Shown piece by piece: positions 47,556 through 51,757 of a DNA stretch of 64,000 nucleotides. The stretch lies in sequence record NC_048045.1. One strand, 5' to 3'. Position 1 is the stretch's first letter. Each line of letters opens with the position of its first letter. The notes under the pieces were generated by a model. It made no database searches. It was not told where the DNA came from and was given only the letters and a program-made list of their open reading frames with translations. The position numbers and the translations under genes were made by a program.

Positions 47556-47850
47556 TCGTGGTGAGGTGAGAACGCCCTCCTCATGCACCGCTTCGGCGGT
47601 AAAGTAGGCTCCGGCCGAAGAGATGCGGGAACAGGGGACCCCGCCACCACGAACGAAGTGCGCCCCAGGTGCGCCTCTGACCGAGAAAGCCCGCTGGCCG
47701 TGGGTGAAGCGTAGGGTCAAGCGTCTGGGTCCCCGTCCTCCAGGACCGGCGAAGGCCATATGCGCCGAATTCCTGGTCAGGATCGCATGAGGGGAGCGCT
47801 GGCGCCGGCCCAGCAGGGGAGGGTTAAAAGCCCAGCCGGCATTTTTCTTC
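47556..47850 (+). ncRNA. Candidate structured RNA
   Basis: TCGTGGTG/CACCACGA closing helix, UUCG hairpin, terminator-like end; family not recognised. Confidence 0.4.
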
Positions 47851-47899: not shown

Positions 47900-47962
47900 A
47901 TGACGCACCTCCTGACCCGTTACGAACGCGAGGCCACCGGCCTCGATACCACCACCGCCTAA
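47900..47962 (+). CDS. Putative leader peptide MTHLLTRYEREATGLDTTTA
   Basis: ATG just after the promoter; alternative CGAGGCC/GGCCTCG pairings. Confidence 0.55.
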   Translation: MTHLLTRYEREATGLDTTTA

Positions 47963-47994
47963 AAGCGGTTTTGGTCCGAGGCCTCTTGTCATGT

Positions 47995-48598: not shown

Positions 48599-48736
48599 AT
48601 GTTCGCCTTGTCGCATCTCAGCCTGAGCACGAAAGCCGCCTCCCCGGCGTCGCTTTCGCTTGCCCTGCTGGCGACGGCCACGAAGCCCTCGACCAAGCCG
48701 ACCACCTCGGCCTCGCACTCGACGGAAACCCTCTAG
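48599..48736 (+). CDS. Putative attenuator leader peptide (45 aa; 42 residues S/L/A/T/K/P/H)
   Basis: Composition mirrors the 14 downstream tRNAs; followed by competing helices and a terminator. Confidence 0.8.
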   Translation: MFALSHLSLSTKAASPASLSLALLATATKPSTKPTTSASHSTETL

Positions 48737-48851: not shown

Positions 48852-48927
48852 CGGGGTGTAGCTCAGTCGGTAGAGCGCTCGGTTCGGGACCGAGAGGCCG
48901 TGGGTTCAAGTCCCGCCACCCAGACCA
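48852..48927 (+). tRNA. tRNA-Pro(CGG)
   Basis: TT-CGG-GA loop. Confidence 0.9.
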
Positions 48928-48934
48928 ACGCCAT

Positions 48935-49011
48935 CGGGATGTAGCTCAGTTTGGGAGAGCGCGCGGCTGGGGGCCGCGAGGCCGCAGGTTCAAGTCCTGC
49001 CACCCCGACCA
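48935..49011 (+). tRNA. tRNA-Pro(GGG)
   Basis: CT-GGG-GG loop. Confidence 0.9.
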
Positions 49012-49016
49012 ACAAC

Positions 49017-49089
49017 GCTGTTGCGCGTGGTTTCGCGCCCACCCCTTGGTATGGGGTGGTAGAAGGTTCAATTCCTTCCAGCAGCACCA
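49017..49089 (+). tRNA. tRNA-Thr(GGT), short atypical D-arm
   Basis: TT-GGT-AT loop, G1-C72/C2-G71, A73, CCA. Confidence 0.7.
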
Positions 49090-49094
49090 GCAAC

Positions 49095-49164
49095 GCCGAT
49101 GCCTCTGGGAGGACGCGCCTTTCGTAAGGGTGCGAGGTGGGTTCAATCCCCACTTTCGGCTCCA
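49095..49164 (+). tRNA. tRNA-Thr(CGT), short atypical D-arm
   Basis: TT-CGT-AA loop; 70 nt; CCA. Confidence 0.65.
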
Positions 49165-49205
49165 GCATAGCGAGATCAAGGAGAAATCGCAAGCAGACAG
49201 AACAT

Positions 49206-49288
49206 GGATCGGGAACGTAAAGCTAGGCCGGGCCAGCAGTGGGCTCTTAATCCACGCGTAAGGGGTTCGACTCCCTCCCGATTCTCCA
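49206..49288 (+). tRNA. tRNA-Lys(CTT), 8/4-type fold
   Basis: CT-CTT-AA loop; GGATCGGG/CCCGATTC acceptor, 4-bp T-stem. Confidence 0.7.
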
Positions 49289-49293
49289 ACAAT

Positions 49294-49383
49294 GCACAAG
49301 TGACCCGAGCGGCGAAGGGCGTCGACTTTTAATCGACTAGGCGTCCAGCCTCACCGAGGGTTCGAGTCCCTCCTTGTGCTCCA
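49294..49383 (+). tRNA. tRNA-Lys(TTT) with long variable arm
   Basis: CT-TTT-AA loop; AGGC/GCCT V-arm; 90 nt. Confidence 0.8.
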
Positions 49384-49386
49384 TGT

Positions 49387-49473
49387 GCGAATGTGGCGGA
49401 ACTGGTAGACGCGCCGGCCTCAGGTGCCGGTACCCTTCGGGGCGTGTGGGTTCGAGTCCCACCTTTCGTACCA
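49387..49473 (+). tRNA. tRNA-Leu(CAG)
   Basis: CT-CAG-GT loop, long V-arm. Confidence 0.9.
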
Positions 49474-49480
49474 ACGACAT

Positions 49481-49568
49481 GCCTTGCTGGCGGAAGTGGT
49501 AGACGCACTGTTCTCAAAAAGCAGGCCGGGCGACCGGGCTCTGGGTTCGATCCCCAGGTGAGGCACCA
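49481..49568 (+). tRNA. tRNA-Leu(CAA)
   Basis: CT-CAA-AA loop, long V-arm. Confidence 0.9.
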
Positions 49569-49575
49569 AGACTGA

Positions 49576-49663
49576 TGCGAAGTGGCGGAAACTGGTAGAC
49601 GCACCGGCATGAGAGGCCGGCGCCCTTCGGGGCGTGAGGGTTCGAGTCCCTTCTTCGCGACCA
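49576..49663 (+). tRNA. tRNA-Leu(GAG)
   Basis: AT-GAG-AG loop, long V-arm. Confidence 0.85.
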
Positions 49664-49665
49664 AT

Positions 49666-49731
49666 GTCCCGATCGGGAAGATTCCAGGCGGCGCGGCGCG
49701 CGCGACACCGGAATCGTCCCGATCGGGAAGA
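49666..49731. repeat. 16-bp direct repeat GTCCCGATCGGGAAGA with palindromic core
   Basis: Copies at 49666 and 49716; GATTCC/GGAATC stem between them. Confidence 0.85.
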
Positions 49732-49743
49732 CGACGAGATTAT

Positions 49744-49814
49744 GCTGATCGCCGCTGGGCGGGGAGCGGGTTGTGTCCCCGCTAGGCACGGTTCGATCCC
49801 GTGGGTCAGTACCA
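49744..49814 (+). tRNA. tRNA-His(GTG), compact D-arm, A73
   Basis: TT-GTG-TC loop; 7/5 stems; A73 as in alphaproteobacterial tRNA-His. Confidence 0.65.
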
Positions 49815-49819
49815 GATAC

Positions 49820-49890
49820 GGGGTATGCGCAGGGCGCAGCCATCCTTTGCAAGGACGGCGGGGTGGGTTCGAGTCCCACATACTCCACCA
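49820..49890 (+). tRNA. tRNA-Ala(TGC), compact D-arm
   Basis: G3:U70 pair, TT-TGC-AA loop. Confidence 0.8.
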
Positions 49891-49894
49891 ACAT

Positions 49895-49984
49895 GGAAGG
49901 TCAACCGGACAGGCGCGCCGGGACTGCCTCGAAAGCAGATCGCACTCTCCGGGGTGTGGGGATCGAGACCTCGGCCTTCCTCCA
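49895..49984 (+). tRNA. tRNA-Ser(CGA), 8/4 fold
   Basis: CT-CGA-AA; GGAAGGTC/GGCCTTCC acceptor. Confidence 0.85.
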
Positions 49985-49988
49985 ACAT

Positions 49989-50078
49989 GGTGAGCGAACG
50001 GGACAGGCGTGCCCGGTCCGCCTGGAAAGCGCGACGCACTCTCCGGGGTGTGGGATTCGAGTTCTCCGCTCACCGCCA
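49989..50078 (+). tRNA. tRNA-Ser(GGA), 8/4 fold
   Basis: CT-GGA-AA; GGTGAGCG/CGCTCACC acceptor. Confidence 0.85.
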
Positions 50079-50082
50079 ACAT

Positions 50083-50172
50083 GGTAGGCGAACCGGACAG
50101 GCGTGCCGGCGCCGTTTGCTAAACGAGCGGCACTCTCCGGGGTGTGGGATTCAAGCTCTCCGCCTACCGCCA
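50083..50172 (+). tRNA. tRNA-Ser(GCT), 8/4 fold
   Basis: TT-GCT-AA; GGTAGGCG/CGCCTACC acceptor. Confidence 0.85.
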
Positions 50173-50214: not shown

Positions 50215-50460
50215 ACAGAGCGAACGCCCTTGGCCGGGTTGGTGGATGTGCCGGTTGCATCACGCCCCGTCGAGCCCTAGTAGCTCTTGAGTGGAGTTTT
50301 CCGCCTCCCTCCCTAACAAGGAGGCGGACCCCAACATCGCGATCCAGTGATCGTCGGCGACGGGCGCCGTTAGAGCCCCCTTGCGCGCGGAAACGCTGCG
50401 GAGGGGATCGTCCCGACCACATTCGCTCGCCGGCAAAAATCTTCGCCGGCGTTAACTTTT
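50215..50460 (+). ncRNA. Candidate ~215-nt structured RNA with its own promoter and terminator
   Basis: TTGACG 50181; GAGCGAA/TTCGCTC closing helix; GCCGGC hairpin plus T-run. Confidence 0.45.
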
Positions 50461-50464
50461 CTTC

Positions 50465-50500
50465 TTGACCTTTGAAAGGTCCTGGTGTAGTTTCCCCGTC
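50465..50500 (+). promoter_or_regulatory. Promoter of the Tyr-to-Arg tRNA unit
   Basis: TTGACC-N15-TGTAGTTT; ATG 7 nt later suggests a leaderless mRNA. Confidence 0.7.
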
Positions 50501-50596
50501 ATGAGCAAGTCGTACCGCCAATTCGTGCAGATTCAGGTCGTCCGGAATTTCCGGGCGGGCCGTTCGCGCATGGATGATGGCGGGACCTTTATCTAG
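50501..50596 (+). CDS. Putative attenuator leader peptide MSKSYRQFVQIQVVRNFRAGRSRMDDGGTFI
   Basis: Codons 5-18 are all read by the downstream tRNAs; contains an 18-nt antiterminator strand. Confidence 0.85.
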   Translation: MSKSYRQFVQIQVVRNFRAGRSRMDDGGTFI

Positions 50597-50622
50597 GTCC
50601 AGACACCTCAACCCAATTCGCG

Positions 50623-50660
50623 AAAGGCCCGCCTGGACACCCAGGCGGGCCTTTTTCTTT
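50623..50660 (+). terminator. Attenuator terminator
   Basis: AAAGGCCCGCCTGG-ACAC-CCAGGCGGGCCTTT plus TTCTTT. Confidence 0.9.
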
Positions 50661-50717
50661 TCCGTTTCGCTGATCCGAGGAGATCGCAGATGAACAACGG
50701 GGGCTAGTCCTCCACAT

Positions 50718-50802
50718 GGATGCTTAAAGCTGGAGGGCTCCAGCCGGGGGCTGTAAACCCCCTCTCTTCGGAGGAGTGGTTCGATCCCACAAGCATCCAC
50801 CA
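50718..50802 (+). tRNA. tRNA-Tyr(GTA), 8/4-type fold
   Basis: CT-GTA-AA; GGATGCTT/AAGCATCC acceptor; GTGG/CCAC T-stem. Confidence 0.75.
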
Positions 50803-50803
50803 T

Positions 50804-50878
50804 GGTCATGTAGCTGAGACAGATTAGCGCCGGCGTGAAATCCCGGAGACGAGGATGCGAGCACCTCCTAGACCACCA
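50804..50878 (+). tRNA. tRNA-Phe(GAA), degenerate T-loop
   Basis: GT-GAA-AT loop, CCA. Confidence 0.65.
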
Positions 50879-50883
50879 ACAAC

Positions 50884-50959
50884 GCCCGATGAGCCAGATG
50901 GGAAGGCACCGCTTTGACATGGCGGCATTGAGAAGGTTCGATTCCTTCATCAGGCACCA
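50884..50959 (+). tRNA. tRNA-Val(GAC)
   Basis: TT-GAC-AT loop. Confidence 0.85.
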
Positions 50960-50964
50960 ACCAC

Positions 50965-51040
50965 GCAAGTGTAGCTCAGTTGGTAGAGCAGCGGACCGAT
51001 AATCCGCCCGTCCCTGGTTCGAGTCCAGGCATTTGCACCA
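50965..51040 (+). tRNA. tRNA-Ile(GAT)
   Basis: CC-GAT-AA loop. Confidence 0.85.
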
Positions 51041-51047
51041 TTTCTGA

Positions 51048-51122
51048 TGTGGCATAGCTCAGGGGTAGAGCGTCCGCTTGATAAGCGGGAGGTCGTGGGT
51101 TCGAAACCCCCTGCCACTACCA
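51048..51122 (+). tRNA. tRNA-Ile(GAT)
   Basis: TT-GAT-AA loop. Confidence 0.85.
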
Positions 51123-51153
51123 ATTCCAGGCCGGCGGAGAGAGCCGGTCCTGT

Positions 51154-51227
51154 AGGCGATTAGCTCAATGGTAGAGCGGGGGTGCCACAAACCTCAGGCG
51201 TAGGTTCGATTCCTACATCGCCCACCA
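51154..51227 (+). tRNA. tRNA-Val(CAC)
   Basis: GC-CAC-AA loop (C33 atypical). Confidence 0.75.
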
Positions 51228-51232
51228 ATTGT

Positions 51233-51306
51233 TGAGGGTTCGTCTAATGGTAGGACGCCTGGGTCTGGTCCAGGTAATCTAGGTTCGAGTCCTAGCTCCT
51301 CATCCA
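51233..51306 (+). tRNA. tRNA-Gln(CTG)
   Basis: GT-CTG-GT loop; U1-A72. Confidence 0.85.
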
Positions 51307-51312
51307 AGTTGT

Positions 51313-51386
51313 TCTCGGGTGGTCTAATGGTAGGACGGCTGGTTTTGGTCCAGCAGGTTGGGGTTCGATTCCTTGGCCGAGAGCCA
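51313..51386 (+). tRNA. tRNA-Gln(TTG)
   Basis: TT-TTG-GT loop; U1-A72, G73. Confidence 0.85.
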
Positions 51387-51403
51387 ACTGCTTTTGAGTT
51401 TAT

Positions 51404-51478
51404 TCCAGTCAATGCACAAGGTGTGCAGCGGCACTGTTAATGCCTGTGAGCCCGGTTCGATTCCGGGGTCTGGAGCCA
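51404..51478 (+). tRNA. tRNA-Asn(GTT)
   Basis: CT-GTT-AA loop; G73. Confidence 0.85.
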
Positions 51479-51503
51479 ACACGCCGGCCTAGGCCGGTCA
51501 TGC

Positions 51504-51586
51504 GCCCTGGTAACCGAGGGGGATTACGAATCCCTTAGTCGTAGCAGGAGTTGAAAAGGGTGGTTCGAATCCACTCCAGGGTGCCA
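51504..51586 (+). tRNA. tRNA-Arg(ACG)-like, D-arm absent, long variable region
   Basis: TT-ACG-AA loop; acceptor, T-arm and CCA intact. Confidence 0.55.
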
Positions 51587-51593
51587 AATCTAT

Positions 51594-51676
51594 AGCGCGC
51601 AGGCCGAGCAGGATCATCGTCAGGCGTCGCCCTCCGAAGGCGAAGAGGCCCGGTTCGAGTCCGGGGCGCGCTGCCA
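51594..51676 (+). tRNA. tRNA-Arg(CCG), expanded D region
   Basis: CT-CCG-AA loop; 7/5 stems; CCA. Confidence 0.7.
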
Positions 51677-51679
51677 CAT

Positions 51680-51757
51680 GCGCGGGTAGCTCAATGGAGC
51701 CAGAGCAGCCGTCTTCTACACGGTGGGTTGGGGGTTCGAGTCCCTCCCCGCGTGCCA
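51680..51757 (+). tRNA. tRNA-Arg(TCT)
   Basis: CT-TCT-AC loop; CCA. Confidence 0.8.

Follow-up and report, generated by a model that had tools for sequence, protein, structure and literature searches.

The stretch of DNA analyzed here (64,000 nt; hereafter the window) corresponds, at 100% identity, to bases 1-64000 of Caulobacter phage CcrBL10 (MH588544 / NC_048045), a phiCbK-like jumbo siphophage of the subfamily Dolichocephalovirinae. Inside the transfer RNA (tRNA) gene array of this phage (47318-51757), we found a short leader open reading frame (ORF) followed by an intrinsic terminator and an operon of 12 tRNA genes. Our results suggest that the leader is the sensor of a ribosome-mediated leader-peptide attenuator, which would gate the tRNA operon through regulatory codons that are the very codons read by the tRNAs; we assign this reading a probability of roughly 0.72. 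The phage would then probably make these tRNAs only when decoding of the regulatory codons slows. The original prediction had described the region as a textbook attenuator layout applied to tRNA supply, and our analysis supports this description: every sequence-level feature of such a layout is present, and all of them are kept across 19 relatives. GenBank contains no annotation from the last tRNA of the preceding tRNA group up to tRNA-Val at 50884, and the leader ORF is unannotated.

The leader ORF (50501-50596, + strand) consists of 31 codons and a TAG stop codon (ATG at 50501-50503 and TAG at 50594-50596) and encodes the peptide MSKSYRQFVQIQVVRNFRAGRSRMDDGGTFI. The operon behind it (50718-51757, + strand) contains, in order, the genes of Tyr GTA, Phe GAA, Val GAC, Ile GAT (two copies), Val CAC, Gln CTG, Gln TTG, Asn GTT, Arg ACG (non-canonical), Arg CCG, and Arg TCT, that is to say one Tyr, one Phe, one Asn, two Val, two Ile, two Gln, and three Arg tRNAs. 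Codons 5-18 of the leader (50513-50554, + strand; peptide YRQFVQIQVVRNFR) form an uninterrupted run in which 14 of the 14 codons belong to these seven amino acid identities. The run reads TAC CGC CAA TTC GTG CAG ATT CAG GTC GTC CGG AAT TTC CGG, exactly as listed in the original prediction, and the claim that it covers all seven identities was confirmed as well, every codon being readable by the 12 tRNAs under standard wobble rules. Likewise, Arg(TCT) is the sole anticodon left unused, such that the run employs 10 of the 11 distinct anticodons.

A run of this length is not expected by chance. The seven amino acids of the run represent 30% of the residues encoded in the phage, and the 14-codon run is the longest in-set run across the six frames of the window, the runner-up being 9 codons long. 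About 0.002 in-set runs of at least 14 codons are expected in the six frames of the window (P ~5e-8 per position). For comparison, the best in-set runs ranged from 2 to 8 codons at ~166 unrelated GC-rich loci that match the RNA patterns by chance. We also observed that wobble codons ending in A or T are over-used in the run and that ATT is invariant in the leaders, although it represents only 6.7% of the Ile codons in phage genes. This excess recalls the slow codons of classical leaders, but it is only suggestive because the sequences are related.

The strongest evidence for attenuation is the comparison with relatives. We analyzed 19 of them, i.e., 16 phage loci (L001-L016) and three metagenomic viral contigs; the phages comprise CcrRogue, phiCbK, Ccr10, BL57, and Magneto, as well as Colossus and PW, the Bertelyvirus phages SC, BL9, and BL47, and the Brevundimonas phages Bambus, Kabachok, Bajun, Kikimora, and Gurke. 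The promoter-leader-terminator-tRNA layout was found in every relative examined, with the same seven tRNA identities behind the leader. The frame, the start, and the length of the leader ORF (31-32 codons) are kept in 19 of 19 relatives, and all 19 present an in-set run of 14-15 codons whose order and residues vary. The leader of CcrBL10 can be written MSKS-YRQFVQIQVVRNFR-AGRSRM..., the leader of phiCbK MSKT-YRQFVRQIQVVRNIR-..., that of Colossus MMT-YRNNVRQIRVRQFN-L..., that of Kikimora MMT-YRQNVQNIRVVRFYR-..., and that of a metagenomic contig MSKT-YQIVQQIVVRRNFR-.... Among the variable columns of the run, 23 of the 24 residue states are in-set, the exception being a Ser in BL9, relative to only 12 of 38 states in the columns just 3' of the run, which corresponds to the background rate (Fisher P = 2.6e-7). 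Within the run, exchanges like F/N, V/R, and N/V would be radical changes in a protein, but a sensor of this codon set would be indifferent to them. The remaining differences between leaders are synonymous (TAC/TAT, CGC/CGT, TTC/TTT, and CAG/CAA) or in-frame indels, one of which is the insertion of a CGC (Arg) codon. Finally, the stop codon of the leader alternates between TAG, TAA, and TGA among relatives.

These patterns bear on a different explanation, in which the leader would be a small gene in its own right (for a 31-aa peptide or a ~160-nt small RNA), served by a separate promoter and terminator; the tRNAs would then be produced by constitutive leak-through or processing, and the match between codons and tRNAs would be coincidental or a by-product of RNA structure. 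We regard this as very unlikely. Even when the local composition is kept, the probability of finding a run of at least 14 codons in any frame is 1.5e-5 (200,000 dinucleotide-preserving shuffles of the ORF), and non-conservative in-set substitutions affect run positions outside the conserved helices. The leader peptide presented no family match in Pfam or PHROGs, and a second matched leader, described below, exists independently. The small-gene explanation does find an argument in the conservation of the C-terminal half of the peptide (AGRSRM.DGG), but the conserved codons coincide with covarying RNA arms, and it is because those codons are RNA arms that this part of the peptide is conserved. 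It finds another in S. meliloti, another alphaproteobacterium, where a terminated attenuator RNA and a leader peptide, rnTrpL and peTrpL, can act in trans (PMC6614838, PMC7298713). Such a role in trans is compatible with attenuation, and the two could coexist.

We further searched for the leader element outside of this group. A scan of metagenomes (120 loci) and a scan of bacterial genomes (23 loci) yielded chance matches without tRNAs and no added relatives. A specific pattern run against 185,579 representative bacterial genomes did not recover the element, and a search anchored on PhoH provided 4 loci only. On present data, the element appears confined to this subfamily of phages.

The RNA structure of the attenuator was analyzed with an alignment of 15 distinct leaders (alignment A1); the elements described here are all on the + strand. 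The terminator scan identified an intrinsic terminator at 50622-50661, which is composed of a 15-pair stem (50622-50636 with 50641-50655), an ACAC loop, and the T-run TTTTTCTTTT ending at 50661. This terminator is located 57 nt ahead of tRNA-Tyr and its hairpin alone folds at -30.8 kcal/mol; a terminator is annotated at the equivalent position in phiCbK, Swift, Karma, and Colossus. The segment R3 (50619-50636; CGCGAAAGGCCCGCCTGG) is common to two pairings: with R4 it builds the terminator, and with R2 (50550-50567; CCGGGCGGGCCGTTCGCG) it builds an antiterminator of which R2 is the 5' arm. The complementarity of R2 to 50619-50636 had been predicted with one G-U pair and one mismatch, and both were recovered, the mismatch being G-A, but the coordinates attributed to R2 (50551-50568) were off by one. 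A third pairing is the anti-antiterminator (1:2) hairpin P1 (50536-50561), in which a stretch within codons 12-16 (50536-50546, the 5' arm) pairs with the 5' half of R2 (50550-50561, the 3' arm); P1 is also part of the minimum-free-energy fold. Finally, a small hairpin, P2 (50583-50600), has the stop codon of the leader within or next to its loop.

P1, R2:R3, and the terminator, which are mutually exclusive, all covary across leaders. For the terminator, 99% of the cells are paired and 4 pairs have changed on both sides. When P1 and the terminator are considered together, 97.7% of the cells are paired, 6 pairs have changed on both sides, and none of the 500 shuffles reaches the observed score; the compensatory changes of P1 are from G-C to A-U at two pairs and from U-G to U-A at a third. 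The core of R2:R3 (11 pairs) is 98.2% paired over the 15 sequences with 3 pairs changed on both sides, and a single shuffle out of 500 reaches the observed score. One example of this covariation is the change from GGGCGGG/CCCGCC to GGACGGG/CCCGTCC in SC, BL9, and Bajun. Pairing drops to 24-62% when the registers are slid by 1-3 columns.

Structure predictions are consistent with a switch between these pairings. The RNAalifold consensus independently recovers three elements, namely P1, the terminator, and a small hairpin in which the 3' part of R2 is sequestered. For transcripts ending before R4, the minimum-free-energy fold is the antiterminator in 15 of 15 leaders (15-17 R2:R3 pairs), and full transcripts fold into the terminator plus R1:R2 in 14 of the 15 leaders. 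CcrBL10 gave fold z-scores of -7.06 (full transcript) and -3.97 (pre-R4 transcript). In the full fold, codons 6-15 of the leader constitute the 5' arm of one long hairpin, with R2 and the bases that follow as the 3' arm. The outer helix of this hairpin (run codons 6-10 with 50564-50582) is supported by per-sequence folds only, its register shifting between lineages. Most leaders have a stop-codon hairpin of the P2 type, although its sequence is never the same (GGGAC/GTCCC, CAGAU/AUCUG, GAGGG/CCCUC, and GUGGGC/GCCCAC). The original prediction had also proposed GGCGGGACCTTT as a second competitor. This sequence is actually located at 50578-50589, again off by one, and is absent from the phiCbK and Colossus lineages. 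The predicted folds place it in P2 and in the outer helix, and it is probably not functional.

The leader is preceded by a promoter-like site (50465-50493, + strand) with a -35 element TTGACC (50465-50470), a spacer of 17 nt, and a -10 element TAGTTT (50488-50493), and the ATG follows 7 nt further. The same layout is common to 16 of 16 phage-record loci (L001-L016): a TTGAC-type -35, a spacer of ~17 nt, a variable -10-like hexamer, ~7 nt, and the ATG. The hexamer is TAnnnn in most of these loci and GACACA in Colossus and PW. The bases between the motifs are unrelated across loci and pyrimidine-rich, and the spacings differ by 1-2 nt in a few of them. No purine-rich Shine-Dalgarno sequence was found ahead of the leader ATG in the 16 phage-record loci. 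We infer that the mRNA is probably leaderless and starts at the A of the ATG at 50501; leaderless mRNAs are efficiently translated in Caulobacter (PMC4117421, PMC8459731). More generally, the motif TTGAC-N18-TA was found at 9 sites in the window relative to 1.26 expected. The positions of this motif include 46945, 50465, 52095, 52274, 55922, and 29917, and the motif likely marks host-type promoters, including those that precede both ends of the tRNA region. From the terminator to the next promoter-like sites (52095 and 52274), we found tRNA genes only. No TTGAC-type promoter-like site was found between the terminator and the operon end at 51757, which indicates that no promoter of this type bypasses the terminator.

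Two further features surround the promoter of the leader. A perfect palindrome, GACCTTTgAAAGGTC (50467-50481), overlaps the -35 element and the spacer; it was observed in CcrBL10 only, the sequence of CcrRogue being different, and it could represent an operator or a chance occurrence. Just 5' of the promoter, a hairpin CGCCGGC...GCCGGCG followed by a T-rich tract (50428-50466) is probably the terminator that ends the preceding operon of 14 tRNAs. The terminator scan missed this hairpin because its loop is 10 nt long.

The preceding operon presents a second candidate leader. The gene gp078 (48599-48736), annotated as hypothetical, encodes the peptide MFALSHLSLSTKAASPASLSLALLATATKPSTKPTTSASHSTETL and is followed by a terminator-like hairpin (to 48840) and by the tRNAs located at 48852-50172. 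It contains 40 consecutive codons within the set {A,L,S,H,T,K,P}, and the next such run in the window is 20 codons long. The 14 tRNAs behind gp078 are Pro (two), Thr (two), Lys (two), Leu (three), His, Ala, and Ser (three), and their identities match the codon set of gp078 exactly. With few exceptions, this set is kept in Rogue, phiCbK, Ccr10 (which carries an in-set, in-frame insertion), BL57, Magneto, Colossus, and Bajun; the peptides of Colossus and Bajun are very different and yet are drawn from the same set of amino acids. The sole match of the gp078 peptide in Pfam and PHROGs was phrog_12742. The runs of gp078 and of the 50501 leader have no amino acid in common and jointly span 14 of the 20 amino acids. 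Judging from these sequences, gp078 is an independent replicate of a codon-matched leader.

The other tRNA groups of the array differ in this respect. Upstream of the Trp/Gly/Gly and Glu/Asp tRNAs, no matched run was found, the best run within {W,G,E,D} being 4 codons long, and both groups appear to be outside of attenuator control. A small ORF (47901-47963; MTHLLTRYEREATGLDTTTA) does follow a promoter-like site just upstream of tRNA-Glu and tRNA-Asp; its codons are unmatched and no terminator comes after it.

The structures described above can be assembled into a model of attenuation. Host RNA polymerase would start at or beside the A of the ATG at 50501, and a 70S ribosome would load directly on the 5' AUG. 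The transcript could then adopt two folds. In the first fold, R2 would be locked to the run through P1 and the outer helix, the R3:R4 terminator would form, and transcription would stop at ~50661. In the second fold, R2:R3 would pair, the terminator would be excluded, and the polymerase would enter the tRNA genes. When Tyr, Arg, Gln, Phe, Val, Ile, and Asn codons are decoded fast, the ribosome would cross R2 and sit at the stop codon, in the loop between R2 and R3, as R3 and R4 emerge, leading to termination. When a matching aminoacyl-tRNA is scarce, the ribosome would linger on codons ~5-15 and melt P1 and the outer helix, and the R2 segment thereby freed would pair with R3 before R4 emerges, such that the tRNA operon would be transcribed. 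Since the products are tRNAs for the same codons, the loop would be homeostatic (negative feedback). The outcome would be a demand-driven synthesis of tRNAs during infection and possibly a response to the depletion of host tRNAs; candidate triggers include a rising codon demand from phage mRNAs, the decay of host tRNA synthesis, and host systems that attack tRNAs (PMC10264068). We simulated the presence of the ribosome by masking its footprint in the folds and found that R2:R3 can form when the A site is on any of codons 2-15 but is blocked when it is on codons 16-25.

Several observations weigh against attenuation in this form. Transcription start, translation, termination, and the response to tRNA levels are all deduced from the sequence; the polarity of the switch and its physiological signal are inferences as well, the polarity resting on kinetic and steric arguments. 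The relatives represent one subfamily, and the sequence counts are therefore not counts of independent events. We dropped the coverage of 10 of the 11 anticodons as evidence (P = 0.19 given the peptide), and Arg(TCT) is without a codon in the run. In terms of structure, the full-length minimum-free-energy fold of CcrSC retains the antiterminator, the folding of gp078 gave no clear attenuator structure, and Colossus has no obvious T-run at the gp078 locus. With the ribosome on codons 26 to the stop, thermodynamic folding again permits R2:R3. In addition, codons 16-18 (AAT TTC CGG) are located where a stalled ribosome masks R2, and stalling there should favour termination. Since a ribosome stalled there would cover the antiterminator arm, a simple model does not allow these codons to work in the direction of codons 5-15, and they include the only Asn codon of the CcrBL10 run. 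Finally, the sensor cannot separate a shortage of tRNA from a shortage of charging, since host tRNAs read the same codons and amino-acid starvation stalls the ribosome equally.

Some of these observations would suit a switch of reversed polarity, in which fast translation to the stop codon frees R2 and leads to antitermination, and stalling or the absence of translation leads to termination; the tRNAs would then be made when translation is healthy. Unconstrained folding with the A site on codons 26-32 and the masking of R2 by a ribosome stalled on codons 16-18 both fit this scheme, as does the position of the stop codon in a conserved small hairpin adjoining sequences that pair with the 3' part of R2. 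We nevertheless consider it quite improbable. A ribosome located between R2 and R3 would have to fit in the loop of the antiterminator with linkers of only 11-12 nt on each side, and an R2:R3 helix enclosing a ribosome in this way is sterically and kinetically unlikely in our view. Moreover, most of the run (codons 5-15) makes up the 5' arm of the R2-sequestering hairpin, as is classical for leaders where stalling gives read-through. A reversed switch would also constitute a positive feedback on tRNA supply without obvious use.

Alternatively, the same hardware could sense amino-acid charging or the general translational capacity or stage of the infection, and would thus be a timer or a starvation sensor rather than a sensor of tRNA abundance. 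The match with the tRNAs would then matter only in that these are the codons the phage cares about. Shortage of an aminoacyl-tRNA stalls the ribosome whatever its cause, as in the trp, his, and thr attenuators (PMC1183508); every codon of the run is also decoded by host tRNAs, and the two leaders jointly span 14 of the 20 amino acids. A generic speed sensor, however, does not need two leaders that are split exactly, and without overlap, along the tRNA identities of their operons. In addition, extra tRNA gives no relief from amino-acid starvation, and the feedback loop is therefore sensible only for tRNA supply. On balance, we find sensing of charging or of translational capacity unlikely.

Considering the two operons together, we think it reasonably likely that the phage carries a homeostat: each of the two tRNA operons would be gated by a leader written in its own codons, decoding speed would be measured set by set, and the matching tRNAs would be made on demand. 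If true, such a homeostat could cover host defences that deplete or cleave particular tRNAs. It would also represent the first case of tRNA genes under leader-peptide attenuation, and no known attenuator would be as multivalent, given the seven amino acids of each leader.

Several features of the array were identified along with the leader. Default ARAGORN finds 8 of the 12 tRNA genes of the operon, Rfam adds tRNA-Phe(GAA) (50804-50878, + strand), and a relaxed scan, covariation, and cloverleaf folds contributed tRNA-Tyr(GTA) (50718-50802, + strand), a non-canonical tRNA-Arg, and the reassignment of one gene to tRNA-Asn. The gene located at 51404-51478 (+ strand) is called Ile-AAT by ARAGORN and GenBank, but its cloverleaf and its alignment to relatives designate it as tRNA-Asn(GTT). 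The non-canonical tRNA-Arg(ACG) (51504-51586, + strand) was recognized from a covarying stem around the loop YUACGAA. It is kept across the subfamily and has a normal acceptor arm and T arm, only ~8 nt in place of the D arm, and a conserved segment of 24 nt located 3' of the anticodon arm; ARAGORN forces its call to Arg(CCT). The Lys tRNAs of the array are unusually long (77-90 nt). GenBank lacks Tyr(GTA), Phe(GAA), Thr(CGT), Lys(CTT), and three Ser genes (50718-50802 and 50804-50878 for the first two; the rest at 49094-49163, 49208-49284, and 49895-50172), and the genomic analysis of phiCbK by Gill et al. (2012; PMC3556154) stated that Tyr or Thr tRNAs do not occur in these phages. A skipping-rope RNA (Rfam RF02924; 48.6 bits vs a gathering score of 36.7) was detected within the array at 47556-47652, directly 3' of tRNA-Gly(TCC).

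Between the terminator and tRNA-Tyr, a Shine-Dalgarno-like GAGGAG precedes a mini-ORF (50677-50707, + strand) of sequence ATG AAC AAC GGG GGC TAG (50690-50707; MNNGG). A mini-ORF was found at the equivalent position in most other lineages, with the peptides MNNGG, MTGGD, MTGG, and MTGN; CcrSC presents a longer ORF and Bajun has no ATG. This mini-ORF might load a ribosome on read-through transcripts.

Arrays of phage tRNAs are thought to sustain late translation or to counter attacks on tRNAs (PMC10264068; PMC3556154). The studies of these arrays concern which tRNAs are carried, and none describes a codon-matched leader that regulates their transcription. Gill et al. (PMC3556154) annotated terminators in phiCbK and mentioned neither attenuation nor the leader, and the paper on the transcriptome of phiCbK infection does not mention tRNAs. 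Our full-text searches, whose coverage of the literature is incomplete, found no description of leader-peptide control of tRNA genes. In cells and viruses alike, it is poorly understood how the expression of tRNA genes is adjusted to codon demand. If our reading is true, the leader would couple decoding speed directly and in cis to tRNA transcription, as a feedback that relies on a textbook mechanism so far tied to amino-acid metabolism. For phage arrays, the question of when tRNAs are made would be added to the question of which are carried, with links to the ideas of late translation and counter-defence. The two leaders could serve as natural orthogonal reporters of 14 aminoacyl-tRNA families in a genetically tractable host. 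As a lesson for annotation, short ORFs located before tRNA clusters and terminators found "in the wrong place" deserve to be re-inspected.

The leader can be compared to several known systems. No Rfam leader family (Trp, His, Leu, Thr, and others) and no T-box matched the leader region at gathering thresholds or at E <= 1; only sub-threshold chance matches were obtained (ctRNA_p42d with 22.8 bits and HepC_CRE with 21.6 bits). The T-box is similar in that it acts in cis from a leader, responds to the state of one specific tRNA, and switches between terminator and antiterminator. In contrast to the proposed attenuator, it binds uncharged tRNA directly and without translation, it targets synthetase and amino-acid genes, and a conserved ORF has no role in it. 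The leaderless polycysteine short ORFs of mycobacteria, which are Cys-responsive attenuators (bioRxiv 10.1101/834739), place a regulatory ORF at the 5' end of the transcript, as proposed for CcrBL10, and the speed of the ribosome on given codons controls the operon. They differ by responding to a single amino acid, by their protein targets, by belonging to another phylum, and by a mechanism that is not the terminator/antiterminator design of CcrBL10.

The attenuators of amino-acid operons (thr, ilvGMEDA, ilvBN, his, leu, and trp of enterobacteria and ilvBNC of Corynebacterium) share with CcrBL10 a short leader ORF, a run of regulatory codons, hairpins of the 1:2, 2:3, and 3:4 types, and an intrinsic terminator. 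The thr and ilv leaders are the closest in architecture: several amino acids are represented in each leader (Thr and Ile; Ile, Leu, and Val) and the codons are slowly decoded. These operons encode biosynthetic enzymes, whereas the operon of CcrBL10 consists of tRNA genes only. The CcrBL10 leader further differs by a run that spans seven amino acids, by its viral origin, by an ORF that runs through R2 into the loop of the antiterminator, and by an apparently leaderless mRNA. To our knowledge, the leader-peptide attenuators described so far all regulate proteins of amino-acid biosynthesis or transport or aminoacyl-tRNA synthetases; in CcrBL10, the regulated genes are tRNAs. By target, the closest system is pheM-pheST of E. 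coli, where a leader attenuator with Phe codons controls phenylalanyl-tRNA synthetase. Like pheM-pheST, the proposed CcrBL10 attenuator would regulate a component of decoding for the codons of its own leader, but pheM-pheST involves a protein and one amino acid relative to tRNAs and seven amino acids in CcrBL10. The class of mechanism is a known one, and what is new is the tRNA target and the codon set of seven amino acids.

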